Assembly: GCA_002269645.1 (NCBI GenBank)
Contig: NIVC01000862.1
Span: 186,001-250,000 of the forward strand
Source of the DNA: Macrostomum lignano
Taxonomy: Eukaryota
DNA length: 64,000 nt
Direction: 5' to 3'
Shown: positions 4,045 through 52,501 of the stretch, piece by piece
Position numbering within the stretch: the first letter of the stretch is position 1
Layout of the letters: the number at the start of each line of letters is the position of its first letter
The notes under the pieces: generated by a model
Seen by the model: the letters and a program-made list of their open reading frames with translations, nothing else
Databases searched by the model: none
What the model was told of the DNA's origin: nothing
Program-made: the position numbers and the translations under genes

Positions 4045-4245
4045 AAGTTCATAGATTCGCATCTCGCTGTTCAGCGCATAAGCTAGCAGAAAGCGGTGCA
4101 GCTGAAATTGGCCACACAGAGGACAGCTCCGTCAGATTCTCTCGGTTACACTCGACGCCGTTCACCTGCAGCGAGAATTCATTGAACCGGTAGGCGCAGC
4201 AGTCCTGTCTGTTGTAGATGGTAACGCAAGAGACAAAACGATGTA
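4045..4245 (-). pseudogene. Locus A: truncated, frameshifted F-type lectin exon relic
   Basis: Reads FVSCVTIYNRQDCCAYRFNEFSLQVNGVECNR, then a 2-nt shift to VANFSCTAFC*. Very similar to exon 2 of locus B. No 5' half and no PAN exon found. Confidence 0.85.
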
Positions 4246-5178
4246 GCGGCCAGCTGCCCCTCTCACCGTCCCACCATTGATTTCCAGCTTGTAGAGTGTG
4301 GCTGCACGATCCCCCAAAAATTGACTTGCATGTGCTTCCGTCGATAGGTTTTCAACAGTGTCCAGCTTCATTGTTATAATCCGAGCAATAGTTGCACAAG
4401 AACTCTCTCTCTCTCTCTCTCTCTCTTTCTCTAACACTACTGCGAGCTACATCTCTTGCGAATTTCGAAAAGATCTGTTTAGAGAAAGCATCGGTAAGAT
4501 GGGATGATATTGTAATTAAGTTTTTACTACTTTTCTTTATAATCCACCCACCGTTCGTTGCGGGTATCCTGATACAATTGCTTTATCACGGTAAGCGATG
4601 GATAAACTTGAAGTAAACTTTGACTGAACTATGAGTAAACTACGAGTAAACTAAGAAAACCAAGGGTAAACTCTGGTTTCACTTTACATGTACATTACGT
4701 GCGCAACTTACTGAAAATGGACGTCGATAGGATGATAAACGATTCGCCATTGATTGCTGGTAAAGGCAGACGCGTTGAACAGTCGGCACGAATCAACCAG
4801 GCAGTAGAATCCGAAGCAGACTGCACAGAACTAAGCAGTCTGCCAAGCTTCATTTTTGAAAAAGTAAGCTCGGATAGAGTACACCATGATAGTCAAAGCC
4901 ATGTAGTATCAGGAAAATCAGTCACAGAACGCTTTACGTCCTTTTTTAAATCTTGTATTTTACAAAAGTATTGTATGCAGCTAGACCTAAAGTGAAGGCT
5001 GATTTTTATCGCTCTTGGATTGGATTTAAAACTTTTGAGTTCTAATTTCAAAGGCGAAAATGGAAAAAAATGACTGTTATAATGATCTTAGTTGATCGCT
5101 TATCGTCTTCACGGTCCTCGGTTTAGTAGTCAACTGGACTACTAGCAAAGTGCTCAGCTGTGAATTCGAATGGATGTG

Positions 5179-5667
5179 TATAATAACACCCGCCTCGATT
5201 TTGTTCTATGGGAAAGAAAGTCCGAGGATGCGTTTCTCAGGCCGAGGCGAAGCCGAGTCTATGAATGCATGGACTTTTATACTTAGCATCTGGACTGGTA
5301 GCGAAAAAATTCGCGTTACCACATGAGGCCATCAGAAATGTATTTAATTTTTTATCGCGAGGCAACGACGCAAATTCAAACTGATTAATTTTATATTCAG
5401 GAAGGACTACTTGTGATTGGGAACGAATTATATACATATGTTGTTATATATATTAGCAGTGTGCAGAGAAAAAGATGCCATAGAAGTATAGAAGTCCATG
5501 ATGAATGTCTCTCCTGCGCTCTAAACTTGCGTTTCCGTCTTTCTAACTGAAGCAGACTAGATGGTAACTACACTGACACTACTTTTGGAAATGTGTCGAT
5601 GGTACAAATGTGGGGGCTTTACCCCCACACCCCTCTCGAGCACAAAATCGAGGCGGGTGTTATTATA
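5179..5667. mobile_element. MITE-like element with perfect 26-bp terminal inverted repeats
   Basis: tataataacacccgcctcgattttgt (5179-5204) and its reverse complement (5642-5667). No coding capacity. Confidence 0.75.
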
Positions 5668-6228
5668 TATACACTTCTTCTGTGAGCGCGTGATCAATCT
5701 AGACAAGCTTTCGATTCGGAATTACAGCAGAACTAAAAGCACTTTTAACCACAAAATATATTCCTGCACAACTTTACCTGCACATTAGACTCAGTTCTTG
5801 GAAAATCATCAATGATGATTGCAGAATTGCTGCACAGCAAAGGCAAATCGTAAAAGATCTTGACACACCTCTTATGTTATCTTCTTGTAGACAAACTCTT
5901 CTTTAATTTTGTTGTGTCTAAATAAAGTTTCAAAGCCAAATAACAAATTCGTTTCGGATGCAATCAAGAGTTTTTGGTTTATTGAGGCTTAAACTTTTAG
6001 TAATTTGAGTTTAACTGAGTAATTTGTTCAGTCAAGTTCAGTTACAAGGATCTGTCTACGCTCGTAAAGTGTCATTGATAGCTTTACTCGATGCTCAATT
6101 GAAGAGGCTTATCTGATTGTGTTGATTTATTAGAAACAATGAGGTCATTTGTCGATTTTTTGTCTACATGTATCTTGCTTTGATATTCAGACCAGATCTA
6201 GGAGTTTGACATCGCCGTCATTGTTACA

Positions 6229-7762
6229 TCACACAATCCCATAAATCTCTATTTCACAGATTGTAAGAGCATATGGCAGAAGGCTCTGCACCTGAACTCG
6301 GCTGCCGAAGGCGTTGCAGCTGAAGTTGGCTAGAGAGAACGGCTCCGTCAGGTTCACTCGGTTGCATTCGACTCCGTCCACCTGCAGCGAGAATTTTCTC
6401 AGCCGGTAGGCGCAGCAGTCCTGTCTGTTGTAGATGGTGACGTAGGAAACAAGAGCAGAAGCAGAAATTTGTGTTATCCACCACTGGCCGTAGCCGTTTT
6501 TAGTGTGGGAGCAGGATCCCGTGGTGTAATCTTGGCCAGTGTTGCCGTCTATAGCTCGGGTGCAGACGCCATCGTGAGTCAGGCTGCTCTGCTCGCAGTT
6601 TGAAGTGTTCAAACGACGCGGTTCTAAGATTTGATAGCGGGATTGATTATTTTAGCCGTCATGAGATTTAGGAGTTATTTACACAGTTTTTAACAGTAAA
6701 AGTACAAAAAAATAGCCGCGTTTTTTATACAAAGTAAAATTCGCCCCCCTCTCTAGAAAAGTTTTGCTGCTCCTGAACGGAGCAACGAAGCAAAGGAGCA
6801 ACTTGATGTCGCTAGCTATCTGGAACGTTCAGATAGTCAATGATTCTGCCAAGACGGCTACCTGCAGAAGGTGCCGACGGCGTCGGGGTGATGACTGAGT
6901 ACTTAAGAAACTGTTGAAAGCAACTCGCAGTTGAGATTTGCACACTGTCGAGGCTTCATCTGTGCCATAGTGCACAGCAGGTCCGTTTCCAAAGCACCCT
7001 GGTGCTATTTTTTTGAAGATTTGGATAAGGCCAGTGGCTGCCAAAATCAGATATCGGCGTGCTAATGAAATTTGAAAGCATTGCAAGACCGCACTGAGGC
7101 ACAGTGCTGATTGGTACACTAGGTGTATGGAACACATGGGCGCTTATTGAAAAACAAGACATTCTGGCAGAACGTTGGTGAGCGCCCCTGTCTCTTAGTG
7201 AGAGCCCCCTCTGTCTCTTGGTGGGTGTCCCTGGCTCTTGGTAAGTGCCACAAGCCTGTCTTTTAGACCGGTTGATGCCATGTCCAAAAAGTAACAAAAG
7301 TGTAGGCACTGCGATTCGTCGAGCTTGCGTGGTTGGCCTTATCATGCAGTTTTTGGAGGTTTTCGTGTAGCGAAATTTTTTTGGGGGCCGCGGCCAATTT
7401 GTCTACTGTTGCTACTCCAATTGTCTATATTCGTGTTATTATTCCGATCAAAGCTCACCGAGATGTCTCTTGTAAACATCGAATTTGCAGTCAACAGCAT
7501 CACACTTGTCCCAAGTCGAATTATAAAATGCGGAGAGATTGAAGAACTGACACAGTCCCTGGATCCAGCTGAAGCCGAAGCAGCCCAACACTTGATTCGT
7601 GCATTTTCTAGCGCAAAACAGCGGGTTTTCGCCCTGCACCACCTCCTCCATCGATGGGGGAGCAACTGGGCTGCTGGATTTAACGATTAAATAGGTAGCA
7701 ATGGTTGCCATGGTGATTCTACTGGCAGAAAGGAATAGAAGTATTATAACTTTATTTCGCAT
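6229..7762 (-). CDS. Locus B: secreted PAN/Apple + F-type lectin protein (intact)
   Basis: Exons 7459..7762 and 6229..6623, phase-1 intron (G|GTGAGC ... CTTAG|AA). Signal peptide; CARKC..CFGFSW..LC; AIDG; CSHT-x-RQDCCAYR matches the H-x26-R-x-D-x4-R motif. Confidence 0.9.
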
Positions 7763-8989: not shown

Positions 8990-10347
8990 GTAAATTTCAA
9001 ACCCTCAAATCGTTAAGAAATGTAGCCTGCAAGTTTTGCACGCGGACCATGCTGCCGAAGGCGTTGCAGCTGAAGTTGGCCACGGAGAACGGCTTCGTCA
9101 GGTTTACTCGGTTGCACTCAACGTCGTCCACCTGCAGTGAGAAGTGGTTGAGCCGCTAAGCGCAGCAGTCCTGCCTGTTGTAGATGGTGACGTACTTGAT
9201 GTGTTGTCTCTTTGCGAGCTGCATCTCCCACACCACTGGTTGGCGGCAGATTCTGTAGCGCTGCAAATGCTAGAATTGAACTGGTCCCTGTTGCCATCGA
9301 TGGCTAGGTCACAGCTATGCGTTGTGTGCATTGAGCTCTGGTTACAGCCGGTGGTACGTAGAACAGCGCGTTCTGGAATACGTTTTAAACCATACGAGCA
9401 TATACATGTAAATGCTAATTTTTACTGATGCTAGCTCGTAAGAATACCAATAACAGTGTCCCGCACAACGGAATCCCGTACAGCAATCCGATGTTGGCTG
9501 ACAAATATGTATTTCTACATTATACCGACGTTCAACCGACGTATGACGTCTTTATCCGTCGATGAAATGTAGCGTCGGATTGCTGTACAAAACCAGACTT
9601 TTCAAGTTTTCCTGTTGATATTAGGGTATTCAGGGGCGTCGCCAAGGGGTGGATGACAGGGGGGGACATGTCCCCCCCCCCCCAGTAAAAGATCTGGGGG
9701 GACATGCCAGTGCTTTGTGCCCCCCACCCCACCTTGTGGCCCATTGTGGAAATCAATAATTTTGCTGCATGGCGACAAAAACGTAGCGCCTACGGCGCTA
9801 AAATGAGTGCCTGCGGCGCTAAAATGAGTGCTTTTGGCGCTAAAATGAGTGCTTGCGGTGCTAAAATGAGTGCCTGCGGTGCTAAAATGAGTAGGATGCA
9901 GGATTATAAAATGTAGAATTCTTGGCTTTGTCCCCCCACCATAAAATCCATGGCGACGCCCATCAGGGTATTGCTAAAACTATGGGCTACCTCAGGCTTC
10001 CCTCATGGCCTCTTGTCGCGTCGATTTGCAGCGGCAATTAGTAAAGCATACCTTTTCCGTAAGCTCGTGTGTAGAGGCTACATTTGGATGAATTTTGCCA
10101 GTCTGCTCGAAGATAGGCACTGACATTGAACAGCCTGCACAGATTGCGTTACCCAGCTGAAACCGAAGCAAGCTGTCTGTTGGCTACACCTGACTGCACA
10201 GGCTACTCTATTGCCGACTGATGCAGCCTCCATGGCAGTTGAAGCTGTGCCACTGTCCTTTTTAACCAAATCAAACTTGACCTGCTGCGAGCTGTTGAAT
10301 GATAAAATTACGAGTATTGGCCACGAGAATAGGATTGTGGAACACAT
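8990..10347 (-). pseudogene. Locus C: PAN + F-type lectin pseudogene
   Basis: Exon 1 (10052..10347) has a +1 frameshift after CFGFSWV. Exon 2 (from 9372) has a 2-nt insertion at QW-W, an in-frame TAG in RQDCCA*RL and a further 3' shift. CSAT replaces CSHT. Confidence 0.85.
9631..9964. mobile_element. Non-autonomous hAT-type element in the intron of locus C
   Basis: TIRs CAGGGGCGTCGCCA / TGGCGACGCCCATC, perfect 8-bp TSD AGGGTATT (9623-9630 and 9965-9972), internal 21-bp minisatellite of about 5 units. Confidence 0.85.
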
Positions 10348-12303
10348 TTTTGCTAAAGTTCTTTAGTGGAGCTGCTCTTTGGACACGAGAACGAATGATA
10401 ACTCTTTTATACTGTCATTCTTGTCGATTCCTATTGGTTTCAGTTTTTTCCCCGCCAAACTCGATAAATCTTTTAACGATATTTGCCGATGAAAAGCAAA
10501 CTTTTAAATTTGAGAGCGCCGACTTTACTCGTTTACCACTGTTTCAATGAATTTTAAATTATATTTTTACGGGGTGATATTTACTCCTAGTTAACAGCAA
10601 GATAACAACCAGTAAAAGGCGTGAATTGAAGCAGGTGCGAACTGTTGGACATTGATTTTATTTATTTTACCGTTTGCCAAAAAGCTTCCCATTGGTGTTT
10701 GCCGTCGCTAATACGCTTATTATAGTGAATTTAGGATAGAGAAATTCGATTTCACAAATACATATCGTATACTAGCTGTCAAAGTAAATCGATGACGATA
10801 TATCATACTAGTTCTAATTTTCCAAGTCGTATACTATTTAACAAAGTGCTGCCATTACAAACATTTCCTCATTTCTCCCCCTGTTTCATGTATCTCATAT
10901 GTTTACCATTTTTTATCTGAATTCTGCTTTTGGTCTGAGGTTCGCGTCTCATGCTGTCTCAAGCCAAAACTGGCCCAGTCCTCAGCAGTGCCCTCTGTTG
11001 TTTCATGCCACAGCTCCGACTAAGTGGCAGACTTTAGCAATATGCTACTGTCATCAGTAATGTTTTCGCATTAGAATCCATAGAAAACTACACGAATACG
11101 AGCTAGTGAAACGGAACATTGTTTTAGTATTAATTAAATAGCTGACGTATAATTTGTTTTACTTAAACAGCATTTAAATCGCACAATGCTGAGGCCCTTT
11201 CGTACGAGACAGAAACTCGGGACGATTTTATTACGAGCGTACTTTATTATATTTTAAGATTTGAGACCACATTTGCTACTACTTTACCTGTCTCGTTTAT
11301 TTCGTTTTTGATCGACTACGTGTTCAAGAATGTCAGTTCAGCACATTTGTGCGTTTTTCAGTCCTTTCTGCAGGCTAGAGGGGAGTTATACGAGCGTAAA
11401 AATGAGAATGGGACCACCGCATTAGGATAAAACAATAAAACAACGCCTTCCCCATGTACGCTTACCCAGCACAACTTTAACTTTTACCAGTCAATCAACG
11501 ATGAAATTCCAACTCCTTGACATTTTTGTCACTGCTAAATGCACTCCCGTGCATCAATCCAATGTCAGCAGCGCTGTCCGACCTCTCGACTTTCCAACAC
11601 ATCGATTTGGCTAGCAAATTGGTACTTTTAAACTGCACTGCCGTTCAGCTGACGTATAATTTCGGCATTCGTCGGCGTAATGTGTGAAAAAGCATTTCCC
11701 AGCGATGTCGAGTAAGTTGGGTAAATCAGCGGCTATTGGAGTGTCGATTTATGATTGAAGCACTCTTCAACGTTTCGGAATTTTTAATTGAGGCTTAAGA
11801 ATCCGCGCTTTTACTTTTTTTGCATGCGTAGTATGTATTTTTTTATATATTTGAATGCGTCAGAGTTGGTTGCATCTACGGCTGGTAAAGGAAAAATAAT
11901 TTTTGAGACGGAGTCCTGACGTAGCTATCCATATAGTTGGAATTATTCGAAGTCCAGTTTTATTGAATACTCGTAATGTAGAATAACTTTTTGAGAACTT
12001 GAAAACTTAAAAAAGTTTGAAGTGGAATAAAGGGTTAGAAGAATAATTTGTTTTTAAAATTAGCAGAAAAGTAGAAAATATCAAAGCTGAAATCTAAGAC
12101 TATCACTTTTTGGCTTTAAGTTGGAGTGAAGATATATACGTTGTAGGATAAAATTTTTTAAGAAGTGCACAAAAACAAGTAAAAATATCACCTACAATTT
12201 AAGCGGTTCTTTGATTCTATACGCTCGTACGTTTGCTAATTTAGCGATTGCAAATCATTGTTCAGCCACAAGCTATTCGAACTAAGAGTGATGCCGCAGA
12301 ATT

Positions 12304-13049
12304 TTAGTATACCTCAACTTCGCACAAAATTAGATAATTTGTGACGAGACTTTGGACTCGAACTCGGCTCCCGAAGGCGTTGCAGCTGAAGTTTCCAATG
12401 GAGAAGGGCACCGTCAGGTTCACTCGGTTGCACTCGACGCCGTCCACCTGCAGCGATAATTTGTTGAGCCACTCCTGACAGCACTCCTGCCTGTTGTAGA
12501 TGGTGACATACTTGATCCAAGTAGCGTTGACCAATTCCACTTCCCACCACTCGTTTGGACCATTTTGCGTGATGCTGCAGAGAGCTGTCAGTTGCGACCT
12601 GTTTCCGTCAATCGCGCTCTCGCAAACGCTTAGGTGATTCGTAGTGGAGTACGTGGAACTCTGCGTGCAGTTGGCTGCTCTCTTCTTCTGGGGCACTGAA
12701 AATTTCAATACGGCAATACAAAACTACATCTCTATGTTATAGATATGAGTCGAAAATTTTACTTACTAGGTAGAATAAAAACGTCGCAGTTGTTGCAGCC
12801 CGTCCAGGCATTCTCATAGGAGCTAATGTTAAAAAGACCACAAAGATTTTGCAGCCAATTAAAGCCAAAGCAGCCAGTAATTTCAGCGCATTTCATAGCG
12901 CAGTCGATCGAACTGAAGCCGGGCACGGATTTAGCGACCGCTGGAGCCTCGGATGCACCCATTTTTACCACTTGAAAAACAGGATCCTGAGTTGACGGTC
13001 GAGCAGCCAGGATGACCACCAAAGCTAAGAGTAGAGTTTTCGAGGGCAT
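12304..13049 (-). CDS. Locus D: secreted PAN/Apple + F-type lectin-fold protein (intact ORF, non-canonical sugar site)
   Basis: Exons 12767..13049 and 12304..12695, 71-nt phase-1 intron (A|GTAAGT ... TTCAG|TG). CSIT and RQECCQEW replace the H..RxD..R motif. Confidence 0.9.
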
Positions 13050-18293: not shown

Positions 18294-19030
18294 TCAACTT
18301 CGCACAAAAGCAGGTGATTTGTGACGACTTTGAACTCGAACTCGGCTCCCGAAGGCGACGTTGCAGCTGAAGTTGGCCACGGAGAACGGCATCGTCAGGT
18401 TCACTCGGTTGCACTCGACGCCGTCCACCTGCACCGAGAATTTGTTGAGCCACTCCTGACAGCACTGCTGCCTGTTGTAGATGGTGACATACTTGATCAA
18501 AGTAGCGTTGACCAATTCCACTTCCCACCACTCGTTTGGACCATTTTGCGTGATGCTGCAGAGTGCCGTCAGCTGCGACCTGTTTCCGTCAATCGCGCTC
18601 TCGCAACCGCTTAGGTAATTCGAATTGTAGTACGTGAAGCTTTGGGTGCAGTTGGCTGCTCTCTTCTTCTGGGGCACTGAAAATTTCAATACGGCAATAC
18701 AAAACCACATCTCTATGTTATAGATATGAGTCGACATTTTTACTTACTAGGTAGAATAAAAGCGTCGCAGTTGTTGCAGAACGTCCAGGCATTCTCATAG
18801 GAGCTAATGTTAAAAAGACCGCAAAGATTTTGCAGCCAATTAAAGCCAAAGCAGCCAGTAGTTTCAGCGCATTTCATAGCGCAGTCGATCGCACTGAAGC
18901 CGGGCACGGACTTGGCGACCGCCGGAGCCACGGATGTACCCATTTTTACCACTTGAAAAACGGGATCCTGAGTTGACGGTCGAGCAGCCAGGATGACCAC
19001 CAAAGCTAAGAGTAGAGTTTTCGAGGACAT
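18294..19030 (-). CDS. Locus E: paralog of D with a C-terminal frameshift (possibly non-functional)
   Basis: Exons 18748..19030 and 18294..18676. A 2-nt deletion relative to D (AGTCTCGTC to AGTCGTC) removes the last strand ILCEVEVY. Has CSIT / RQQCCQEW. Confidence 0.8.
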
Positions 19031-24134: not shown

Positions 24135-24933
24135 TCACTTGTAGAATCCAAAGGCTTCAAACTCGCAGATAGTGAGGCTATCATCTTTGAGGCTCAATAT
24201 TCGAACTCGGCTGCCGTAAGCATTGCAGCTAAAGTTGGCCACGGAGAACGGCAGTCTCAGGCTCACTCGGTTGCACTCGACGCCGTCCACCTGCAGCGAG
24301 AATTTGTTGAGACGGTGAGCGCAGCAGTCCTGTCTGCTGTAATTGGTGACGAAAGAGACATGAGCAGCAATCCGCAGCTTAGCCTCCCACCAGGCTGGAA
24401 ACATTTCCGGTCGCTCGCTTGTGTGAGAGCAGGATCCGTACTTGAAGTTTTGCTAGGCATCTCCATTGATGGCGCGCACACAGGAGGCGTCGCGTCGCTG
24501 CGAACTTTGCTGGCAGCCAGAGAAGTCAAGCTGTTGCAATTCCGCATTGTCTACTGGGATTCGAAAGGAAGGGAGTTTCAGTTATAAGCTAATTAAAGGA
24601 GACAAAATAATTACGTCGGACAGCAGAAGCCTTACCGAGTGGCCGAGAGTATAGGTCGCAACTGGCCGATGGATGCCAGGCCTTGGTTCTATACGCTGTC
24701 CGGTTGAAGAATCGGCACAGATGCAGCAACCAGCTGAATCCGTAGCAGTTGGGTATTTTTGAGCAGTGCTCAGCGCACAACAGTCTGTCTAGAGCGGCAG
24801 ATCCGATGGAGGCTGGCGCGATTAAACTGCGCTGTTTAAAACGCTTGAATGTAACCTGCTGCTGCGATACGTCACCAAGCAGAACTGTGCCACAGAGTAG
24901 CAGGGAAATAACTTTATTAAAGTTACTAGCCAT
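24135..24933 (-). pseudogene. Locus F: PAN + F-type lectin gene with one premature stop
   Basis: Exons 24636..24933 and 24135..24553 splice in frame (phase 1, 82-nt intron). TAG at 24453-24455 in AINGDA*QNF. Otherwise retains CSHT and RQDCCAHR. Confidence 0.85.
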
Positions 24934-27700: not shown

Positions 27701-28149
27701 ATAAGAACCTGTAAATGCATTTTGATTAACTTTAATAACAGCAGCCGCAGTAAACAGCTACAAAGCCTTGGGCTTTGGTAGGCCCAGTTGCTGTGCCGGT
27801 TTCACCGCATTTGACAGCCTGCTCAAGTCCTACTGACAGTTACAGATCTGGTCTCTGGGGTGAAAAATGCGATGCAAAATACCTGTGGCATAGCAGCTGG
27901 GCGTAGAATTGACCATTCAAATTATAAAAATATCAGAGATTCCATTAACGTTAATTAGAGTTTTCTGCAGTTTCAGAAACTCACAAAGGCTGTTGAATGT
28001 CGTGAGCTAAGATTGAAGCAATCCTAGCGCAATTTGGAGCTTCTTGGGTCCATCGCTATCACCTATTCGATAAGAAATGCTTCAACCTAGCGAGCTCCGA
28101 TGCTTTGATGATGCCGACACCCTACCAGTCTGTGCAAGCCATACAGAGC

Positions 28150-28520
28150 GAGCTGCAGTGATCCCTGCTGTGCAAGACTCAGTAATATGTCTGTTTCGAA
28201 TTCTACTGGCAAGCGATGGCTAACGCTCTTTCCTGCCGATTGTTCAACATATCTACTTTTTTTCAGCAAGATTTCGTTTTCTTACACAAATCTGAATTTG
28301 TCTCTGATGGCAGGCTGAAACGACGGCTGTCGCATCTCCAACAGGCTTGACATGAGCTTGGAAAATCTCAACAAATTTACTCTATTCGTCAACGGCATGG
28401 AATGTGCCAAGGAGGACAGCAGGGTTCAGTACTTCTCTGTGCTGGCGCTCAAAAGCTTTGGCTACGGCAGTCGAGTTCGCCTAGTAAGTCGCCTAGGAGT
28501 TGAGTCTGTGCGAATTCCAG
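28150..28520 (+). pseudogene. Locus G: heavily decayed PAN + F-type lectin relic
   Basis: CFEFYW...CRLFNIS (28192-28255, PAN-like), *WQAE, then ISNRLD..LNKFTLFVNGMEC...FS...GYGSRVRLVS (28334-28495, FTL-like). Stops and frameshifts lie between these. Confidence 0.6.
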
Positions 28521-30328
28521 CTATATGGGTCGCCTGTATCTTTGTTGTCATAGCAACCGGAGAGTTCGACACCCGTGTTTTAAAGAGTTAATAAGAAGCC
28601 TGTTCAAAACGTAAAAGAATTTTTAACAGTCTATAAGAAGGCTTTATTTTTAGATATTGTTTTAATACTATTTAATTTTCTCAAACTTTTTCAACATAAA
28701 CATTTTTAATCTCGTAAGAAGTAATTTTACTATGCTCTAGTTTGTGACACTGACATTGATTATTTTATATTTTCTACAAGTTTCTCAGCTTTCTACCTTC
28801 AACTTTCGTACCTTCATTTTAATACGCTTTGAACTCCTCGTCGTTCTTCCATCCTAACGGATTTCTTCCCACTGCACTGCGTACTTTGTTGCGTATTCGA
28901 AGAAAACAAATTGTTGCAGTAAACAACTCATTGTCATGCCTAGCCTGTAAAGATAGGGGGTGGGGGGCAGACTGGTGCTTTCCCAGACAATGCGGTTCAT
29001 GAATTCAGGGAGTGACAAGACACATATCGCCAATTTCTGAGCGTGAACTCAAAATTACATTCAATGCGGCTATCAAAGAAGTTTTGTAGTGCAGTTAAGC
29101 TAAATAGGACGTACCTAAGCTAGTGGAGTCAGCTGCTGGGCAGTCTAACAACAGTAAACTAAAACTTTCGAGCCCTCAAGCGATTTTGGATGTAAAAAGC
29201 AGGCCAAGTGAACCATTTGGCTTAATTTTTAGTTTGCACAGCTTCTTCGCACTGCTTTTTTCTGGAAGATGATTTTTAAGGAACAACTGACTTCAGAATT
29301 GACCAAACGTACTTCAAGTCTCAACCATGAGCTACTCATATATATATTGTTGGCAAACTAAACTAGCTAGCTCGTACATCATTTGCAATTCGAGCATTAA
29401 TGCTTTTCAGTTATAGTTTTTGTTTGCCAAAATTTCAAATTTCTCCGACAATCTTCGTGATCTTCTCTTTTTTACATCTTGTTGATTTTCAGATGTGTCG
29501 AAATTCAAGTTAAAATGACAATTTTGTCAGGAAAAATTTTATTGAGATTTTTCGGCTAGAATCAAATCGACAATACAAAAATTATTGAAAATACGTAGAA
29601 AGAAGAAACCTTCACTACCGATACAGACTCTTGTCTCATGGAAATTTCATATGCTGAGCAGGAAGGGAGAAGTAGGAAACGAATGAAGGGAAAAAACTGC
29701 AGTAAACTTTTTTTACTTTGCTTAATACGATGCGCCAGAGAAGCCTATGCAGATTGCCCCTGAATACAATATCAACAATAAAAACCGTTCAACCCAGTGC
29801 AGTGCAAAAGTTTCCCACCATCCGGCTTGCAAAGCAATACATCATTGTAGAAGATGGGAACTGCAAGCGGAACCAGAAAGTCTAACCGAAAGGCTTCTTT
29901 GCAGCCTTGGTTTTTACCATATCCTAGCGACCGTGAAACAGGAAGTTACAGAGCAGCCTCTGGCTTCAACCGTCGTTTGACGAGACGAGCATCCTGGTTA
30001 TCTCTGCTCTCCCAAGTTCCTGCATTAACTAGACTCTTATATGAGAAATAAACAGATTCTGCATGCTAAAAAATGACTTCCAAAAACACATGAATCATGA
30101 ATCAACAAAATTCTGTCTTTTTGTATTAAAAACTATATTTTTATATAGATAATCCGAGAAAAATTATTGGCTTATCTACCGCGGATCCAATAATACGTGC
30201 GACAAGCAAAAAGTAAGCCAAGACCTCATCAGTATATCAGTTGCTCTTGAAGTCGCAGCTAAAATGCAAACGGCGATCATCTATAGAGACTCCCCTCGCA
30301 AACCGTGTACGGCTGAATAGAACCAATA

Positions 30329-31094
30329 ATGCATTGCACGAAGCTGTTACTTCTGCTGATCTTTGCTGGCGTTTTGGAGCGATTCGATGCCAAAATCGTG
30401 TTCACTGCTGTCAAACAGCGCAGCGTTTCGGCTCCTGTCGCAATAGAAACCACGCCGAGCAACAACCGACTGAACTGCGCAGAAATCTGCACGAAGAAGT
30501 CAAACTGCTTCGGCTTCAACTGGTTGAAGGGCCAGTGCCGCGTCTTCGACTTGTCAGCTTTCTTTAGTGACGTGTGGGAGCGCTCGGATGAGTGTGATGT
30601 GTACACCATAAAGAGCGGTGAGGGCATCATGTTGTGATAACCTTCTTTCTAGGTTGAAATCATGTAAAATAATTTGTAAATAAAATCCTCTCGTACCTTC
30701 AGAAATGCTCCAAATCGCCGGGTGCAACCAAAGCTCCGATCAGGGCGGCCACGTGTGCGAACGAGCCATCGACGGAAACAAGAATCCCAATTTGTACTAT
30801 AAATCCTGCTCTCATACCGTCGACGGATACGCCGGTTGGTGGGAGGCGCACCTGGCGGCTCCTGCCCTCATCTCCTACGTCACGATCTACAACCGGCAGG
30901 ATTGCTGCGGTGGCCGGCTGAGTAATGTCAACCTACAGGTGGACGGCGTCGTGTGCAACGTGTTGAACCAGGTCAAGACCTATAAAATTGGCTCGTTTAG
31001 CTGCAACGCCTTTGGTAGCACGTTCCGGATCGCCCATCGATTCTCGCAATCGCTCAACATCTGCGAACTTGAGCTCTACACCATCGTTAACTAG
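30329..31094 (+). CDS. Locus H: secreted PAN/Apple + F-type lectin protein (intact)
   Basis: Exons 30329..30617 and 30703..31094, 85-nt phase-1 intron (G|GTGAGG ... TTCAG|AA). CSHT...RQDCCGGR. Confidence 0.92.
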
Positions 31095-33051: not shown

Positions 33052-33481
33052 AAACCCCTGCTGGCTTAACAAAGGCGTAGGCGTGGTGCTGGCTAGTTTT
33101 TCGAGGGCTTTTCACTGTGCCAATTTTGATCACAAGCAACCGATCATGCAAAAGTATCGATTTCAATTTCTAAGCAATTTCTTAGCCACAATGCCGTTTA
33201 GGCTCGTACAGAATCTTAACATTTTCTGATCGAACGGTTAAACCATTTAAAAAAAAATTAATTGAACTGCAACCATTATATTGAGAAGTGCAATCAGCAG
33301 ACAGGAGGGCAAAGGCAGCGGGGTGGCAGCGAGCACGAAGCAGCGACGCGGCGGAGGGTCTCCCGCAAAAAATCCCATCTTTCCGGAGCACTTTGTGCGA
33401 AAATTTTACGAGTTTTGTGGGAAGCGTCCTTCGACTCGAGTTGTTTATTGCAGCATCAATACTAGACGTAATTAGGATTGT

Positions 33482-36472: not shown

Positions 36473-37714
36473 ATGAAACGGGATCGCGTGCTGTCATTGC
36501 TGCTTTTGTCAGTTGTGGTTTTTGACACTATTACGGCTCGATTGGTGTTCTCAGCAGTGAGAATGCGCGGCTACTCGAGCCCAGTGGCCATCGAGTCTAT
36601 CGCTGGCATCGGTAGGATGCAATGTGCCAAAGATTGCTCCGAAAAAGCTGGCAACTGCTTTGGTTTCAGCTGGATGCCGGGTCTGTGCCGACTGTTCAGC
36701 TTGTTGGCATTCCACGACAACGAGTGGGAAAGTTCGGATCTGTGTGACGTGTACACCGTTGAAGCTAGTGAGTGCTTGGAACGGTAGCATGCTGTAAATT
36801 AAAGTTATCGGCAGTTTATGGATCACCCCATAAACTGTCCAGTCTATAGAGTATAATAAAGCACTTAATATCGAGTATTAGGACAATTGATGCACAAGAG
36901 GTCTATTAAGAAAGATTCCAGGTGACGGTTCAGTGGTACGGCGTGTGCTTGCGGGTGTCAATGGCTAATCTCATAGTTAAGAGGTTTCGACTAGCTAATC
37001 AAGAATTAGCCTCGTCAGTCACAAATTCGACTACTAAAACAAAATGAGCCAATCTAGCGTCAGAAAATTATAGTTTGGAATAGATGTGCGTTTACATGCA
37101 CGTCAGCGTGTGCCTAATACGTGCGTAACCTTAAGAAACATATTACTAGTGCTCTGTCTCAACACCCTCTTGTCTGGCTGATGTTCATCTGTCCCCGAAA
37201 GTTGCGTTGCATCAGTCCTTGAAAATTATCGAAGTTCTTGACTAAGTTAAAAATTTAGCAAAGCCTACTAACTACATGTAAAAAATAGCCAACTGACTAA
37301 TAGTAGATTCCTATTTTCCACAATTCAGAGAAGCTCCAATTCATCGGCTGCACCCAGAGCTCCACTGATGGCAACAAAGTTTGCGAAAGAGCTATCGACG
37401 GTAACAAAAGCCCAATAATTAAAGATGGGTCTTGTACGCACACGATGGATAACTTGGCCGGTTGGTGGGAGGGTGAGCTGTCCGCTCCCGCTCTGATCTC
37501 GCATGTCGTCATCTACAACAGGCAAGACTGCTGTGCGGATCGAATCAACCAAGTCAACTTGCAGGTTGATGGTGTCGATTGCAACCGACTGGATTTGACG
37601 GTGACGTTCAACGTGTCCAGCTTCAGCTGCAACGCGTTTGGCAGCCGGTTTCGCATCGCTAGTCGCCCAGTAAAGTCGATTAATTTGTGCGAGGTCGAAG
37701 TCTACGGAGCCTAA
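36473..37714 (+). CDS. Locus I: secreted PAN/Apple + F-type lectin protein (intact)
   Basis: Exons 36473..36767 and 37329..37714, 561-nt phase-1 intron (A|GTGAGT ... TTCAG|AG). CTHT...RQDCCADR. Confidence 0.92.
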
Positions 37715-42309: not shown

Positions 42310-42310
<1 letters not shown>

Positions 42311-42359: not shown

Positions 42360-42363
<4 letters not shown>

Positions 42364-44003: not shown

Positions 44004-44969
44004 ATGTTTATGCCAGCGCTGCTGCTGTTTCTGCTGATCGCTCAGGTCGCTCTGTTCACCACGAGCTCTAGTGGCTACGAGCTTCTCCAAAAGTCGCCTG
44101 TTCCTGACTGTTCGAGCTCGAGTCCTGCGCCTGAAGTGGCGTCGAACCCGGTCGGGCTGAACAACGCAGCGGCCTGCGCCTTGGCCTGCACTGTGGCTAC
44201 GGCGAGGTGGTGCTTCGGCTTCTACATGACGAAATCGAACTGGTGCCGACTAGTTAGATATGACGCTTTCATAAAGAGCTGGCTTGACACTGCGCACTGT
44301 CCGGAGTCGATTTACGTCCTACCGATGCCCGGTGAGCTAGGGGATTTTCTTTTATAGAAGTTTACCCCAAATAGACTTGGAAAGGCCAAATAAGACGAGA
44401 AAAAGATTACTTTGGATGCACTTGTCTTTTTTTCAAGGCCGAGCCGATGCTTGAATCTATAATTATATCTACGTAATTTAATTGTATTAAATTATTATCT
44501 GCATCGGTCATAATAAAATAAATAGCTATTTACGTATAATTTTATTCTGCAACGCGTGTGCAAACTATTCTCTATCATTTTAGATATCGTGAAGCTTAAT
44601 GCCGTAGGATGTACTCAAAGCAGCAATTACTTAAACGGCGTTTGCGAGCGAGCTATAGACGGTGACACAAATCCAAAATTTTCTGGACAATCATGCAGCC
44701 ACACTTTAAATACTGCTGATCAATGGTTTGAAGCTCAATTTCAAACGGCCGTGTTTGTCTCGTACGTCACCATCTACAATAGGAATGACTGTTGCACTAG
44801 CCGAATGAACAAGCTCTCGCTGAGAATGGACGGTGTAGAGTGCCACCGCGTCGACGTTTCCTACTCTGTGGCCAATTTTACCTGCAACGCTATTGGAAGC
44901 AGGTTCCGGGTCTACAGCACCCAGTCGCAAGCAGTGAATATATGCGAAATTGAGTTTTTTGGCCACTGA
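44004..44969 (+). CDS. Locus J: secreted PAN/Apple + F-type lectin protein (intact)
   Basis: Exons 44004..44331 and 44584..44969, 252-nt phase-1 intron (G|GTGAGC ... TTTAG|AT). Six-Cys PAN; CSHT...RNDCCTSR. Confidence 0.92.
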
Positions 44970-45510: not shown

Positions 45511-46224
45511 TTAGCGTGGTGTAATGTTGAATGTGCAATTGTCAAATTTGCAGTTCTCAAAAACGCTCGCCTGGTTGGCACCAATCGATACGCCTTGGTT
45601 AGCTACAATTGACCCAGCCATGCCCAACGCAGTCGTATTTTGTGACAGTACGATGCATCCAGCAGTCGAACTTGCTCCCGCGTTGCTGGCGCTCTGACCA
45701 GCCGATGCCAGGGTTTGTTCCGCAGTGCCAGAGAGTCGCCCACTGATTGCTCGGGATAGGTTGACTTTTTTGGAGAACTTCAATCTCTTGTTGTAATGTT
45801 CAACGCTCTCCGCTCGTTTGTGACCGGTCACGGCTTGAATCTCGGAAACGCTGACGCCATCCTCCATCAAGTTGGTTACAACGGAGGCGCGTATGCAATG
45901 ATTGGTGTGCGCACGATTGCTCAGTCCCGCCAGCTCACACAATTTCTTCATGAACTCATTAAGGCAGTGTTTGCCGAGTACAAGGCTCTTGTGATACCAG
46001 AAACCTTCCATGGAAAACCCTCGTTCCAGCGGTTTAGGCCACAGACAACCGACGTCATCTGGTATTTTTGCCAGGTACATCTCCATCGCACGAACCGGAC
46101 ACGTATTCGGGTCAGTCGACGTTTCGGCCAAAATGATCGACTTTCGTGTGGTTGGGTCGTCCGCCGTTACTGAGCTACTGATACTGAGCCGGACTTTACT
46201 GCGAACTCTCAAAGGTGGCGACAA
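45511..46224 (-). mobile_element. Crypton-type (DUF3504-like) tyrosine recombinase, C-terminal part
   Basis: CPVRAMEMY, LWPKP, WY...LGKHCL, NHCIR (H-x-x-R), VTGHK, VEHY (catalytic Tyr) and terminal FDNCTFNI. The N-terminal catalytic Arg region is absent. Confidence 0.8.
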
Positions 46225-47108: not shown

Positions 47109-47545
47109 GGCACTCATTTTGGCGCCGCAGGCACTCATTTTGGCGCCGCAGGCACTCATTTTAGCGCCACAGGCACTCATTTTAGCGCCGCAGGCACTCA
47201 TTTTAGCTCCGCAGGCACTAATTTTAGCGCAGCAGGCACTCATTTTAGCGCAGCAGGCACTCATTTTAGCGCCGCAGGCACTCATTTAGCGCAGCAGGCA
47301 CTCATTTTAGCGCAGCAGGCACTCATTTTAGCGCCGCAGGCACTCATTTTAGCGCTGCAGGCACTCATTTTAGCGCCGCAGGCACTCTTTTAGCGCCGCA
47401 GGCACTCATTTTAGCGCCGCAGGCACTCATTTTAGCGCCGCAGGCACTCATTTTAGCGCCTCAGACACTCATTTAGCGCCGCAGGAACTCATTTTAGCGC
47501 CGTAAGCGCTATATTTTGGCGCCCTGAAGAAAAATTATTGATTAC
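47109..47545. repeat. 21-bp minisatellite (GGCACTCATTTTAGCGCCGCA)n, about 19 units, from the same element family as 9631..9964
   Basis: The unit is the reverse complement of the 9795-9892 repeat. Flank 47497-47543 matches the reverse complement of 9750-9800. Confidence 0.9.
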
Positions 47546-47582
47546 CAAAACGACTCACAAGGAAGGCTAGTGAACTTTCTCA

Positions 47583-48095: not shown

Positions 48096-50475
48096 GCTTT
48101 GTTCAGATTCTGCTTTCATTTTTGCAAATAAGAGAAAGCAAACAGTGGATTGCACGGCAGGAAGGATTTCACACTGCTTTCTACTTGGCAGAGCAATGCA
48201 TTTGTTTAATCTGGCACTAATTAGTATGAAGACTCATCCGAGTCTTGGCTCAAAACTTTGGGTCATCTAGTTTCACACAAAAAGCATGACGTCATTATCT
48301 CTGCACGAAACACATAAATCGTGAAGGACCGGGGGGGGGGGGTATCACGGCAGATAAATGGACGAAGGATCCAACTGAATTACGCTTGACACTGTGACGA
48401 GACCCTTCTGAGTTCGGTACTGACGGCTATGCACAATAATAAATTATCAGACAATCTTACGGCCGAATCGAGTTGACTTGTCTTATCCTATATATTTGAA
48501 GAGATAGGATACACTTTTAGTTTTATCGCCGTTAATTTTTTGATGTTAAACAACTGCAAACGGGCACAACGCGGCGGACCAACCGAAAAGCACGAGACAA
48601 GAGACCGATTAGCGCAAAATCGCGATTTAACAGTCTTTTAAATAATTATTTCAATAAATAATAAATAATAATAAATAATAAATAATAAATAATAAATAAA
48701 AAAATTTAGATATTACTTTTTAATAATAAATATTTAAATAATTTAAACAATATTTCCATGAAAGATACCGTAAAACAAATTTTAAGCGTACGTATTGAAT
48801 AACTTTAAAATTCGCTAATGAATAGTAGATAAATTAATACAATACTAAGGAGACATTAATAATACCATATTACAATATTTACGAACAACTAAATATCAAC
48901 ATCGTTACAACACGTTAATTGGGTAATAAAACAGCTCAACCAGTTGAAAAAAAGCCCATGTAATTACCTAAGTAATCCTTACTTTCCTAGGTAATTTACT
49001 TTGCGAGAACTTCCAGAAAGTTTTCTTACTGAAAGGAATACAATCAATATTACTCAGATACATCGAAAAGTCGCCATCACAGAAAATCCCATCTGTGGTC
49101 GCCACTTTTGAGAGTGCATGCAAAGTCTCTCAATCTTTGCGAGCAGCACAACTTATAGCTACGCCGAGGCAGACTTGAGTTGGGGAATGAAGTGGGGTAG
49201 CGCTGTGCGAAGGCTGGACGAATTAAAGCTACCCCTCAGCTCTCTCGCTAGAGTGGCAACTTTTGTATGTTGCTGAGTATACATTAGGAGAAAAAGCAGT
49301 AGCTAAAATAGAATTTGTAGCCATTTTTATCCAAATCCATGGAAGCTATTAATTATATTGAAATCAAAGTTTTAAATAAAACAAACTTTTCTCTGTCTTA
49401 GATTTTTAATTAAATATTTTTGTCAGTAAATTTATTCATACTTTTCTTAAAAGTAAACGAAATCTGATTTAACGAGAAAAACTTTTCCGTGCTGATATCC
49501 TTGTAGATTCGGTTTGGTTCGGTTGGTCGCGCTTTCTGCAACAGGTAATCTTAGTTTATTTTAAAACTCTCCCAGCAATACTGAGTATATCTATATTTAT
49601 CTAAGCTATCTGCTTCAATTATTCATAGTATTGATAGATGAATATTATCTCTTGCGTTAATGGGCAAAGCAGTTTTTTACTATTGGCATTCTAAAATCCA
49701 ATTGAAGCATTATAACGGTGCTAAATTAATAAGACGTAAAAGCGGTAGTTCTCGAGATTGCTATGGAACTGATATTGACTCATAAAATATTGAGTCCAAG
49801 CTTACAAACTATTAGTAACTATATTTTGCCTTGGAACAGCCAGAATGTTCTAGATAGAATTTGATTCAACCTTGTATTTTTGAATATACGAGTATTTATC
49901 TTGGAAATCTCTGGGTCACACTGCTTATTACTACAGTTTTACCGGGTAATAAAAGTATTACTGCTAAGTAGTTGACTAAACTACGAGGGTAGAGACGAAA
50001 CAAATTTTATGCAGCATTCAGTGTGTCAGCTAAAAGGTTGATTAAAACAAATATGTCAAAGTTATAGATAATTTCAGTGATATAACAGGTAAGGAAATAT
50101 TGAAAGTTACTCTTTTATCTGATCTGATAATATTGATAAAAAAAGTAGGCTAATCGCCTGCTTAAACAAGACTGCATTGTCTCGATCGCAGTGTGACAAC
50201 ACGAGCGGCAGAAATATAAAGAATAGTAGCATTTTAAACTGATGCCTAGAAAGATCTGCATACTAAATAAGTGCTACTCATATAAAGCTCTTTTCGAAGG
50301 TAATATAAATTTGTAGGATATGGTGCAGAAATATTTGACGATTTTTCATCAACGTTGATCTGTTTTTAAATAGACAATCACGGCTTTGCAGATTACGTAG
50401 ACTCAAAGAGCCCAAAATTCAATCTGTTACGCTCATATTTTTGTACCATTTATTATCCATCCGTTCCATGCTAGT

Positions 50476-52501
50476 TCAGGCAACCCTAATTCCAAAGATG
50501 TACAGCTCGCACATTACCAGACCTTTGCTTAGTGGAGTTTGAATTTTCACAACGTTGCCATAGCGACCGCAGGTGAAGTTGCGAATAAAGAATGGAACGG
50601 AGGTGATAAATTCGACGCACTGGAGGCTATCCACACTGATCGTAAGCTGATTGAGTCGTTCTGAGCAACAGTCCTGGCGATTGAAAATCTGAACCTTGGT
50701 GACGTAATAGCCCGGACCAATGTCCGTCTGCCACCACTGGTTGGATGACTCGCTCGTGTGGCTGCAGTAACCGTTTCGAAAGTTCTGATCAGTATTGCCG
50801 TCGAAGAGGCGGGAGCAGACGCCGCCCCAGAGATCTGAGCTTTGCCGGCAGTTGGTCAGGTTGATGCGTGTCTCAACTGAAATTGATGGGTTAGAATAAG
50901 CGTTGGAATTGCGCGCGTAACGCTTTCGATTGTGCAAGGTCAAACCTTAAGGCCGGTTCGCATTATCACTAGTAGCTCCGTGGGTTAATGATTACGAGTA
51001 CTTGATCATCACCAGAGCCACGTTTTTGGGCCATTAGCCAAAAGTTTAAAAGCTTGTTGTCGGATCTGTCCTCTATTGCGACAAAAGAGAGCTGAACAGC
51101 CACACTGTACGCCATCGCCTTATTTTCTATTACAACCAGACGCACAAGGGGCGTCCCGGCTACCGACAAAAGGAACACGAGAAATGGACAAAGTATGAGT
51201 ACACACTAGCAAATACCTCCGTGCCTCCATCTGGTGTGTATGATGGCCGCCGCCAAACATACTCATATGTGAGTAAGAGCCCTTGAAAATCTTACTGTAT
51301 TTGTTCCTTATATTGCAAGTTGAGCCTAATATAAAATACGAGTATTTAAACGAATAGCTTTCTCAGATGCGCGTTGCTGAAAAGATATTTTCGATATCGA
51401 TTGGTCAATATTTGAGCGATGAATATGAAAGATGAAAAAATACTTTATCGGCTTGCTTCACAGGAGCAGACTGTTGACAACAATGCTGAAATTGAATTTC
51501 CTAAAGAATGTTCCGATTTTCATTCAAACTGGTAGCTCAAGTTTCCTGGTCAAACAAATTCTTCAGCAAATATTGCATTTTTCGACTGCAAATAATGCAA
51601 TTTTTAGCCGTGATAGATTGTTTCCCCACAAAAGGTTATGGCTCGTAGAACGATAGGACACATATACAGTAGACAGGGTGTACGATCTAAGGGTAAGGTA
51701 AAATAATAATCTTTAAGGTATCAAACGTAAAAGTATGTTTGGAAGCATAGAAGATTAAAAATTGTAGATTTTATCAGGAAAATCTGCTAACATCTCAATA
51801 TGCGTAGTAATTGCTGGAGGGAAATTAGGCACTCAATCGTCATGCCTACTAAACTGTCAATAGTTTTGAAGTGTTACTAGGTCTATATGCTGTCACATGC
51901 TCGGTAAACACAATTTTTATGTCGTCGTTTTGAGTTCGTGCCGAATGTGCCGACAAGTTCTTGGTTGTGACAACTGAGGCCGGCTTACATTACCGCTAGT
52001 AGCTCAAGTCTGCTCTGGGTTGGTTCAGCTCGAATTTAAACAAATTTGATCAGCTGAGCTGCCAACGGTGATGCACGTTTGAACTATTAGAAACTGATAA
52101 AAACGTGCTCAACTCTGTGCCATTAAGTATGCGATAGATATTTGGTACATGCACTCACCAGGCATAGGCATAGTGTAGACTGACTCGGGACAGAGAGATG
52201 CGTTAAGCCACGTCTTGACCAGGACGTTAAATTCAACCAGACGGCAGGAATTGAACTGGGACAAGTAGAAAGCAAAGCATGAGTCATTGTTTTCAAAAGC
52301 CAGGGTGCAAGCCAAAGCACAGGCTCGAGAGTTATTCAGTTCGGCTATTTCTACCGAAGCCACCTCTTCGATTGGTGCGGTGCGGCCTTGACAGGCAGGA
52401 CGCGGTGACTGCTCCAGTAGTTGATAAAAAGCGGAACTGCTGGCTGTCAGAGAAACGGGTAGCTTCAGAAAAACGAGAACTATGACCGATGGTACGAGCA
52501 T
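50476..52501 (-). CDS. Locus K: secreted PAN/Apple + F-type lectin protein (intact, most divergent lectin domain)
   Basis: Exons 52159..52501 and 50476..50876, 1282-nt phase-1 intron (G|GTGAGT ... TTCAG|TT). LFDG; CSHT...RQDCCSER. Confidence 0.9.

Follow-up and report, generated by a model that had tools for sequence, protein, structure and literature searches.

A tandem cluster of genes pairing a PAN/Apple-like module with an F-type lectin domain in the flatworm Macrostomum lignano

Organization of the cluster

The window analysed here, a 64-kb stretch of Macrostomum lignano DNA (64,000 nucleotides), contains exactly 11 loci in which a PAN-like exon is paired with an F-type lectin exon. All of them lie within positions 4064-52501, and neither tblastn nor a profile-HMM scan of the six-frame translation found further loci of this kind in the rest of the window. 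They are built to a single design, in which an exon for a signal peptide and the PAN-like module is followed on the same strand by an exon for the F-type lectin domain (FTLD), with a phase-1 GT..AG intron between the two. At all eight loci with readable junctions (B, D, E, F, H, I, J and K) the donor is GTGAG or GTAAG directly after the last exon nucleotide (N), and the acceptor is a pyrimidine-rich AG that restores the frame; intron length across the loci ranges from 71 to 1282 nt. Of the 11, six remain intact (B, D, H, I, J and K), the other five (A, C, E, F and G) being disabled:

Locus A, 4064..4821, minus strand: pseudogene, from tblastn and HMM matches; exon-2 remnant 4064-4396, exon-1 remnant 4732-4821; in-frame stop, 3' frameshift, most of exon 1 gone, GA microsatellite in the intron.
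Locus B, 6229..7762, minus strand: intact, 232 aa (splice model); exon 1 7762-7459, intron 835 nt, exon 2 6623-6229.
Locus C, 9012..10350, minus strand: pseudogene; exon 1 about 10062-10323, exon 2 9012-9385; both exons frameshifted, stop in CDR4 (CCA*RL).
Locus D, 12304..13049, minus strand: intact, 224 aa, fucose triad lost; exon 1 13049-12767, intron 71 nt, exon 2 12695-12304.
Locus E, 18294..19030, minus strand: recent duplicate of D with its 3' end disabled by a 3-bp insertion and a 2-bp deletion near 18327.
Locus F, 24144..24933, minus strand: near-intact pseudogene; exon 1 24933-24636, exon 2 24553-24144; one in-frame TAG near 24453, frame otherwise open and full fucose motif retained.
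Locus G, 28069..28547, plus strand: pseudogene, both exons badly decayed; the PAN exon has two stops and the lectin exon has lost its N-terminal half; frameshifts.
Locus H, 30329..31094, plus strand: intact, 226 aa; exon 1 30329-30617, intron 85 nt, exon 2 30703-31094.
Locus I, 36473..37714, plus strand: intact, 226 aa (splice model); exon 1 36473-36767, intron 561 nt, exon 2 37329-37714.
Locus J, 44004..44969, plus strand: intact, 237 aa (splice model); exon 1 44004-44331, intron 252 nt, exon 2 44584-44969.
Locus K, 50476..52501, minus strand: intact, 247 aa (splice model); exon 1 52501-52159, intron 1282 nt, exon 2 50876-50476.

The spliced products of the six intact loci are uninterrupted over 224-247 aa, and the mature proteins would be small, with two domains in about 200 aa. 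Their hydrophobic N-terminus and the lack of any later transmembrane segment support a secreted character. The first-pass annotation had described at least 11 loci of this two-exon, phase-1 design, six of them intact and with secreted products; that description stands, with the count now fixed at 11, the same six splice models open and the design seen at each of the eight readable junctions.

The spliced product of locus D is identical to the M. lignano UniProt entry A0A1I8G576, an independent model, and locus E matches the truncated entry A0A1I8G6K3; both entries are unreviewed and automatically named. The exact sequences of the other five intact genes (B, H, I, J and K) are absent from the large public protein collection that was searched. 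The decayed locus G has its nearest relative in the C-terminal unit of M. lignano A0A1I8GI06.

The F-type lectin domain

Exon 2 encodes a true F-type lectin domain, as the first-pass annotation had proposed, and three kinds of evidence agree on this. In Pfam, both PF22633 and PF00754 score above their cut-offs in the intact copies (in I, by homology), with F5_F8_type_C_2 reaching 37-49 bits against a cut-off of 27.8 (44.5 in B, 40.5 in H, 39.1 in J and 48.9 in K). A phmmer search of the PDB returned 3CQO (E=1e-18) and 1K12 (E=5e-14), both of which are matched by H, as well as SpX and lectinolysin. Finally, the AF2 model of the H domain (pLDDT 73-92) has as its best Foldseek matches 1K12 (1.9e-10), 3CQO, lectinolysin and SpX. 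Paralogs of these genes carry the UniProt name "FTP domain-containing".

Of particular interest is the candidate fucose pocket, whose residues were mapped through the published numbering of the eel agglutinin AAA (PMC5712786) and the phmmer-PDB alignment. H134, R161, D163, the vicinal pair C164-C165 and R168 correspond by alignment to AAA H52, R79, D81, C82-C83 and R86. Of the six intact copies, five (B, H, I, J and K) carry the motif H-x26-R-x-D-x4-R, including the H/R/D/R residues of the fucose triad, as do pseudogenes A and F. Loci D and E lack it, their three key residues being I, E/Q and W (the site of D reads CSIT and NRQECCQEW), and in pseudogene C the motif His is replaced by Ala. The fucose motif that the first-pass annotation had cited for F-type lectin domains is found in all the intact copies but D, in which sugar binding, to judge from these residues, has probably been changed or lost. 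The vicinal Cys-Cys pair is present in every copy, D included. Paralogs P0063, P0102 and P0001, from elsewhere, likewise carry substitutions of one to three triad residues and, together with D, indicate that fucose binding is not universal in the family.

The Ca2+ site of AAA is formed by N35, D38, N40, S49, C146 and E147 (PMC5712786), and D120, S131 and C218-E219 align with its ligands D38, S49 and C146-E147. At this putative site D120 is invariant and C218-E219 is conserved, while at position 131 B, H, I and J have Ser, D has Leu and K has Tyr.

The N-terminal module

For exon 1 the evidence is weaker but coherent, and it points to a PAN/Apple-like module. The C-x3-C-x5-C-x9-C core is invariant, as are C50, C54, C60, C70 and C89; Apple domains add to such a core an outer Cys pair near the two termini. 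J and K have an additional N-terminal Cys, making six in exon 1 (Apple-type in J), whereas H and I are without it and have an odd total of 13 Cys. When a profile of the exon-1 family was run against the PDB, PAN/Apple structures ranked first (1HKY at 0.0098, 4A5V at 0.025), with PAN proteins spanning E-values of 0.0098-3. AF2 predicts one long helix with four or five strands, and the Foldseek matches to this model are weak (E >= 0.47, TM 0.37-0.48), being mainly SML-2, plasminogen, the HGF N domain and MIC4; the model of the K exon also returned mostly PAN modules, again with weak E-values. UniProt labels some of the paralogs Apple or CW.

The HMM scan that the first-pass annotation had called for gave a divided result, with F5_F8 above its cut-off but PAN_1 above its own (21.4) only in H, at 24.6 bits; D scored 14.5 and paralog P0063 19.2, and no Pfam PAN match was found in I, J or K. 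The earlier reading of exon 1 as PAN/Apple is supported, less strongly than that of exon 2, by the match in H, the cysteine core and the PAN-led profile and fold lists, and is weak for I, J and K, which have no such Pfam match and Foldseek E-values of 0.47 or more.

Divergence and evolution of the family

The six intact products share only 28-54% pairwise identity, in keeping with the wide divergence first reported (I is 54% identical to H; K is the most divergent copy). As judged from the alignment, variability is concentrated in the loops equivalent to CDR1-3 (entropy 1.3-1.9 bits), which surround the conserved pocket; values of 0.33-0.72 bits are found in VCxRAIDGN, CSHT and CDR4. There are 25 invariant columns, 13 of them Cys, and the reading frames persist though silent sites are saturated (pS 0.64-0.80 in every pair except D/E). 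That the pocket residues have been kept in five of the six intact copies despite this saturation argues for selection on the pocket itself. The cluster had also been called diversifying; in the sense of positive selection this is not demonstrated, because the synonymous sites are saturated. The comparison by region and pair gave no signal of positive selection, pS exceeding pN almost throughout the cluster copies.

Loci D and E form the one recent pair, with 85.8% nucleotide identity over 1.2 kb, intron and flanks included (dN 0.069, dS 0.130, omega 0.53). The other copies in the cluster are old, and in a neighbour-joining (NJ) tree those of the window are intermingled with paralogs located elsewhere. 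A birth-and-death mode of evolution, as first proposed, is borne out by these old paralogs, the one recent duplicate pair and the five pseudogenes. Among the paralogs elsewhere, P0063 is intronless, with signal peptide, PAN module and FTLD in one open reading frame. No full-length two-domain relatives were found outside M. lignano, and from the sequences now available the family is specific to the Macrostomum lineage. The literature yielded no paper describing it, and the pairing of PAN/Apple with an FTLD is not among the F-type lectin architectures of the family review (PMC5712786). The domain architecture is new; the lectin family itself is known.

Possible roles

The best explanation of these observations, and one that we consider reasonably probable, is a secreted PAN-FTLD family engaged in fucose-type recognition at the body or gut surface. 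The conserved pocket would bind terminal L-fucose or similar sugars, the variable rim loops would give each paralog its own fine specificity, and the PAN module would supply a second binding or oligomerising surface, through which the proteins could cross-link or agglutinate, much as the two-headed proteins proposed in the first-pass annotation might. Such recognition would most likely take place outside the cell, on the surface of the epidermis or gut, and serve defence or the handling of microbes or food; an immune or surface-recognition role is drawn purely by analogy with other F-type lectins. UEA-I, a fucose-binding lectin, is specific for Fuc-alpha1,2-Gal only, so that endogenous fucosylated ligands are possible even where it does not stain. 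It gave background staining only on M. lignano tissues (PMC4890501), a weak hint in favour of non-self ligands.

The same modules might instead serve structural or physiological secretions (mucus, rhabdite, frontal-gland, adhesive or extracellular-matrix products, or gut lectins capturing fucose-rich diatom polymers), with PAN and FTLD cross-linking glycoproteins. This we consider possible but doubtful. It fits secreted, cysteine-rich products with two potential binding modules, and a related M. lignano protein joins an FTLD to WSC, another carbohydrate-binding module; in an acoel worm, genes of the fucolectin family are markers of epidermal and secretory cells (PMC8097308), and several of the gland types of M. 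lignano are uncharacterised (PMC4890501). It is not obvious, however, why such a role would call for some 20 paralogs that diverge so strongly and vary at the rim of the pocket, no mucus or adhesive proteomic link was found for these proteins, and the M. lignano adhesion papers do not mention the family.

Rather improbable, in our estimation, is a function as seminal-fluid or gamete-recognition lectins whose divergence is driven by sexual conflict in a promiscuous hermaphrodite, though oysters do employ FTLDs as polymorphic sperm bindins (PMC5712786) and lineage restriction, high divergence and turnover are traits typical of reproductive proteins. The cluster copies show no measurable selection signal and this analysis found no gonad link for the genes; the main text of an M. 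lignano seminal-fluid in situ screen does not contain the word "lectin", and lectin, fucolectin, Apple, PAN and FTP are all missing as terms from the accessible part of its supplements. Least probable is re-use of the lectin fold for protein-protein binding, with sugar binding lost or never important and the motif residues structural, which would suit the triad substitutions in D, E, C and paralogs P0063, P0102 and P0001 and the report that one substitution can abolish FTLD binding (PMC5297725) but not the retention, despite silent-site saturation, of triad, vicinal disulfide and Ca2+-aligned residues (with Tyr at position 131 in K) in five of the six intact copies.

A bolder extension of surface recognition, which we offer only as a tentative and on balance unlikely proposal, is that these genes form part of a Macrostomum-specific, germline-encoded variable recognition repertoire of some 20 or more paralogs in several clusters, with glycan specificity set by CDR1-3 and each lectin having its own PAN partner, acting in mucosal immunity or in partner or sperm recognition. 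If true, this would be an independent new case of lectin-based repertoire expansion, on a pairing unreported for F-type lectins. These lectins are well studied as a recognition family, and their flatworm members are essentially uncharacterised. M. lignano is amenable to RNAi, transgenesis and in situ hybridisation, and with six intact, divergent genes lying in one compact cluster this makes glycan specificity, tissue of expression and role (defence, mucus or feeding, or reproduction) directly testable. The triad-less copies (D, and the remnants E and C) beside triad-bearing ones also offer a natural series for the loss or change of FTLD specificity.

Comparison with known systems

The closest parallels are the eel agglutinin AAA (1K12), the striped bass MsaFBP32 (3CQO) and the eel eFL isoforms, which share with the flatworm proteins the fold, the HX26RXDX4R motif, the vicinal Cys-Cys and secretion, and whose Ca2+-site residues have the aligned counterparts given above; on both sides there are multiple isoforms, with CDR1 and CDR2 varying about a pocket that is conserved. 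The flatworm FTLD is shorter than theirs (about 125 vs. 140 aa), with deletions after the CDR4 strand, and has an extra disulfide pair (C104, C115) bracketing CDR1, and its genes form a tandem cluster. Each protein has only one FTLD, joined on its N-terminal side to a PAN/Apple module, whereas other F-type lectins have tandem FTLDs or are combined with CTLD, pentraxin, CCP or FA58C. Within M. lignano itself, the WSC-FTLD protein A0A1I8J1D5 (P0027) has a closely related FTLD that is again preceded by a small cysteine-rich module of carbohydrate-binding type, but this is WSC in place of PAN, and its gene model, with three WSC-FTLD units, may have run tandem genes together.

Oyster sperm bindin also presents an FTLD repertoire with diversity around the fucose pocket (PMC5712786), while in the flatworm the diversity sits in many old germline paralogs, without demonstrable positive selection or a known gamete link. 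The apicomplexan PAN/Apple lectins (Sarcocystis SML-2, Toxoplasma MIC4 and Eimeria MIC5) give exon 1 its best matches in sequence and fold, if marginal ones (E 0.01-0.6), but are tandem PAN arrays without an FTLD. They show that a PAN module can bind galactose-type sugars by itself, as the flatworm module may. The C. elegans CTLD class IV proteins, in which a C-type lectin domain is joined to a CW/PAN module, are similarly small and secreted, unite a lectin with a PAN-type module and have undergone multigene expansion (PMC5297725). Since the lectin domain is C-type in the nematode and F-type in the flatworm, and the phyla differ, this likeness is one of analogous, convergent architecture rather than homology of the whole protein.

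Gene models and organization of the cluster

Searching the window by tblastn with the exon peptides gave ten pairs of exon 1 (signal peptide and PAN-like part) and exon 2 (F-type lectin domain, FTLD) plus one decayed locus, while a profile-HMM scan of its six-frame translation placed both exon types at eleven loci, A to K, between 4064 and 52501, with no further exon match at E < 0.1 in the rest of the window. Loci A to F and K are on the minus strand and G to J on the plus strand. At every locus with a readable junction the donor (N/GTGAG or N/GTAAG) falls one base into a codon and a pyrimidine-rich AG acceptor restores the frame; the introns are phase-1 and 71-1282 nt long. Complete products of 224-247 aa are encoded by B, D, H, I, J and K. 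The first-pass annotation had described at least 11 loci of a shared two-exon, phase-1 design, six of them intact, and the nucleotide-level junctions, the locus count and the list of intact copies all agree with it. The other five loci are disabled, as follows.

Disabled loci of the cluster
A: exon 1 reduced to a remnant; a stop and a frameshift
C: both exons frameshifted; one stop
E: 3-bp insertion and 2-bp deletion close to the 3' end
F: one TAG as the sole lesion
G: exon 1 with two stops; half of exon 2 gone

An assembly artefact was rejected for E, whose 2-bp deletion lies outside any homopolymer, and for F, whose lesion is a clean TAG; both lesions are probably real, with polymorphism possible.

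The spliced model of D agrees at every residue with UniProt A0A1I8G576, so that the exon join had been predicted independently; E equals the truncated entry A0A1I8G6K3. B, H, I, J and K have no exact match in a collection of 15 billion sequences. Stronger support for the gene model than this UniProt identity comes from PAA66165.1, on contig NIVC01001584.1, where a single intronless ORF spans the signal peptide, the PAN part and the lectin domain.

The F-type lectin domain

Exon 2 is, by profile match and predicted fold, an F-type lectin domain. The profile scan proposed as a check on this identity bears it out, with 37-49 bits against Pfam F5_F8_type_C_2 (cut-off 27.8). Among PDB entries, phmmer ranks MsaFBP32 (3CQO, 1e-18) and eel agglutinin (AAA; 1K12, 5e-14) first, then pneumococcal SpX and lectinolysin. 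These same lectins are the best Foldseek matches of an AF2 model of H (pLDDT 73-92 over the FTLD), with CBM32, discoidin and APC10 folds ranking below.

Binding-site residues were mapped through the AAA numbering (PMC5712786) and the phmmer alignment against the PDB. H134, R161, D163, C164-C165 and R168 of copy H align with AAA His52, Arg79, Asp81, Cys82-Cys83 and Arg86, and D120, S131 and C218-E219 align with the AAA cation ligands. The F-type lectin motif HX26RXDX4R (PMC5297725) is kept in B, H, I, J and K. In D and E the key triad positions are Ile, Glu/Gln and Trp, and several paralogs elsewhere also deviate; the fucose-binding motif is present in five of the six intact copies and lost in D.

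The PAN/Apple-like module and secretion

The annotation of exon 1 as PAN/Apple fared less evenly in its profile scan, PAN_1 exceeding the cut-off only in H (24.6 vs 21.4 bits), with D sub-threshold and I, J and K giving no match. A Cys core, C-x3-C-x5-C-x9-C, and a distal Cys are invariant in exon 1. When a profile built from twelve exon-1 peptides was ranked against the PDB, PAN/Apple structures came first (Eimeria MIC5, 0.0098; Toxoplasma MIC4, 0.025; the HGF N-domain, 0.34; then factor XI apple domains). Foldseek matches of an AF2 model of K exon 1 (pLDDT 70) are weak (E of at least 0.47) and mostly PAN modules: SML-2 lectin, plasminogen, HGF NK1 and MIC4, together with a fungal copper oxidase, an enzyme with an N-terminal PAN domain. 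Automatic UniProt names of the paralogs include "Apple" and "CW domain-containing". A PAN-only profile had no significant match among 5.8 billion sequences, a collection too large for so short a domain. Profile rankings and model together point to a PAN/Apple-like module, on weaker evidence than the FTLD identity. The six Cys of J and K form the full Apple pattern; in H and I the N-terminal partner is missing, leaving an odd total of 13 Cys with Cys89 unpaired, which could allow a disulfide-linked dimer.

All copies begin with a strongly hydrophobic 10-mer (mean Kyte-Doolittle 2.5-3.6), and hydropathy of the products gave no later transmembrane-like segment in any copy. The proteins are accordingly predicted to be secreted, as had been proposed.

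Divergence and selection

Identity among the intact copies is 28-54%, and pS is saturated (0.64-0.80) for every pair but D/E. The latter share 1.2 kb at 85.8% identity, intron and flanks included (dS 0.13, dN/dS 0.53), and are a recent segmental duplicate. That frames have stayed open, with 25 invariant columns (13 of them Cys), while silent sites became saturated argues for long-term purifying selection. The cluster had been called diversifying, and in the sense of divergence it is; positive selection finds no support, since Nei-Gojobori comparison of all pairs and of four gene regions gave pN < pS in almost every region, and with silent sites saturated pN/pS is uninformative for or against it.

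Variability within the FTLD peaks in the loops aligned to AAA CDR1, CDR2 and the post-His loop (entropy 1.3-1.9 bits, maximum 2.58), while VCxRAIDGN, CSHT and NRQDCCxxR stand at 0.33-0.72 bits. The family thus resembles the eel isoforms and oyster bindin (PMC5712786) in combining a conserved pocket with a variable rim.

Some 150 nt of exon 2 form a core with 81-84% identity among A-F; for B-D the core pS is 0.38 vs 0.6-0.9 elsewhere. Recent gene conversion was considered and rejected, since no pair shows near-identical tracts and the identity is evenly moderate throughout. The core peptide is conserved in paralogs from other loci too, and the pattern looks like constraint under purifying selection rather than recent conversion.

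Other features of the window

Rfam and tRNA scans found no Rfam family or tRNA gene in the window. The remaining features are these.

Features outside the lectin exons
622-1608, minus strand: 328-aa ORF with four 42-bp repeats at 999-1168; marginal DUF1502 match
32155-33060: very regular 15-bp minisatellite GCCCCTGGTGCTAAA, 60 copies, 99% matches
45511-46224, minus strand: 237-aa ORF in the J-K interval; Phage_integrase 36 bits, DUF3504 weaker
47109-47502: 21-bp tandem array between J and K, ~19 copies
53023-53655, minus strand: 210-aa ORF with hydrophobic segments, adjoining K on the right
58576-59952, plus strand: intronless 458-aa rhodopsin-family GPCR just outside the cluster; 7tm_1, 111 bits
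60506-61100; 61264-61689; 61821-62048: (TGTATA)n microsatellite, 99 copies, then two self-reverse-complementary stretches

The integrase-like ORF is probably the remnant of a tyrosine-recombinase (Crypton-like) mobile element within the cluster. The 21-bp array has a relative at 9732-9892, in the intron of pseudogene C (85.7% identity, opposite strand), and the two look like fragments of a common repeat or mobile element. The minisatellite gives rise to long spurious ORFs on each strand and lifts local GC to 0.525. The two stretches after the microsatellite match their own reverse complements at 79-85% identity and are palindromic or inverted-repeat structures, and the 42-bp repeats encode a Gly/Ala/Asp/Leu/Pro-rich (AGLP-type) peptide repeat. 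Neither the exact GPCR sequence nor the 210-aa ORF occurs in the public protein collection searched; the latter has no Pfam match.

The wider family

In a neighbor-joining tree the window copies are interspersed with M. lignano paralogs encoded elsewhere (P0001-6, P0063, P0102 and the C-terminal unit of P0026), which indicates an old, dispersed family of at least about 20 members. With five disabled loci, the recent D/E duplicate and old paralogs interleaved in the tree, the tandem cluster is evolving by birth and death, as first suggested.

Some relatives depart from the two-exon plan. P0063, the intronless PAA66165.1 (10001-10657 of the NIVC01001584.1 region examined), is solitary within 20 kb, has Gln and Gly in place of the His and Asp of the binding motif, and could have arisen by retro-copying or by loss of the intron. 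P0027 (A0A1I8J1D5) consists of three near-identical units of FTLD and WSC, a small Cys-rich carbohydrate-binding module, and P0026 (A0A1I8GI06) joins FTLD-only units to a PAN-FTLD unit bearing a signal peptide of its own. Each of the two looks like a run-on model covering another tandem lectin cluster at a different place in the genome.

Possible function and relation to known lectins

Our literature searches found nothing linking Macrostomum with F-type lectin, FTP, Apple or PAN, and those on planarians, immunity and single-cell data gave nothing useful on the family. The sole paper with both Macrostomum and "fucolectin" deals with an acoel worm, whose epidermal and secretory cells have fucolectin genes as markers (PMC8097308). 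In a M. lignano seminal-fluid screen the main text never mentions lectin, and the supplements searched contain no lectin, fucolectin, Apple, PAN or FTP terms. The fucose-specific plant lectin UEA-I gave background staining only in M. lignano (PMC4890501), which hints weakly at non-self ligands.

The best reading is of a secreted fucose-type lectin repertoire that would act, as a candidate role, at body or gut surfaces, the PAN module providing a putative second surface for binding or oligomerising. A reproductive role is a live rival, as is a structural or feeding one.

In an exhaustive HMMER search, the full-length two-domain relatives among the matches listed all come from Macrostomum lignano, and none of the listed non-Macrostomum matches with an upstream extension has PAN upstream of the FTLD; the best 150 matches are dominated by multi-FTLD proteins, which may mask weaker two-domain relatives outside Macrostomum. 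The family is a real, uncharacterised and apparently lineage-restricted variant of the F-type lectins in a birth-and-death tandem cluster. It is no new kind of system, since lectin gene expansions and unusual FTLD pairings are both expected. The FTLD partners given in a review of F-type lectins are CTLD, pentraxin, CCP, transmembrane and FA58C, with PAN not listed (PMC5712786), and the closest architectural parallel is offered by the "C-type lectin + CW/PAN" class of nematodes (PMC5297725).
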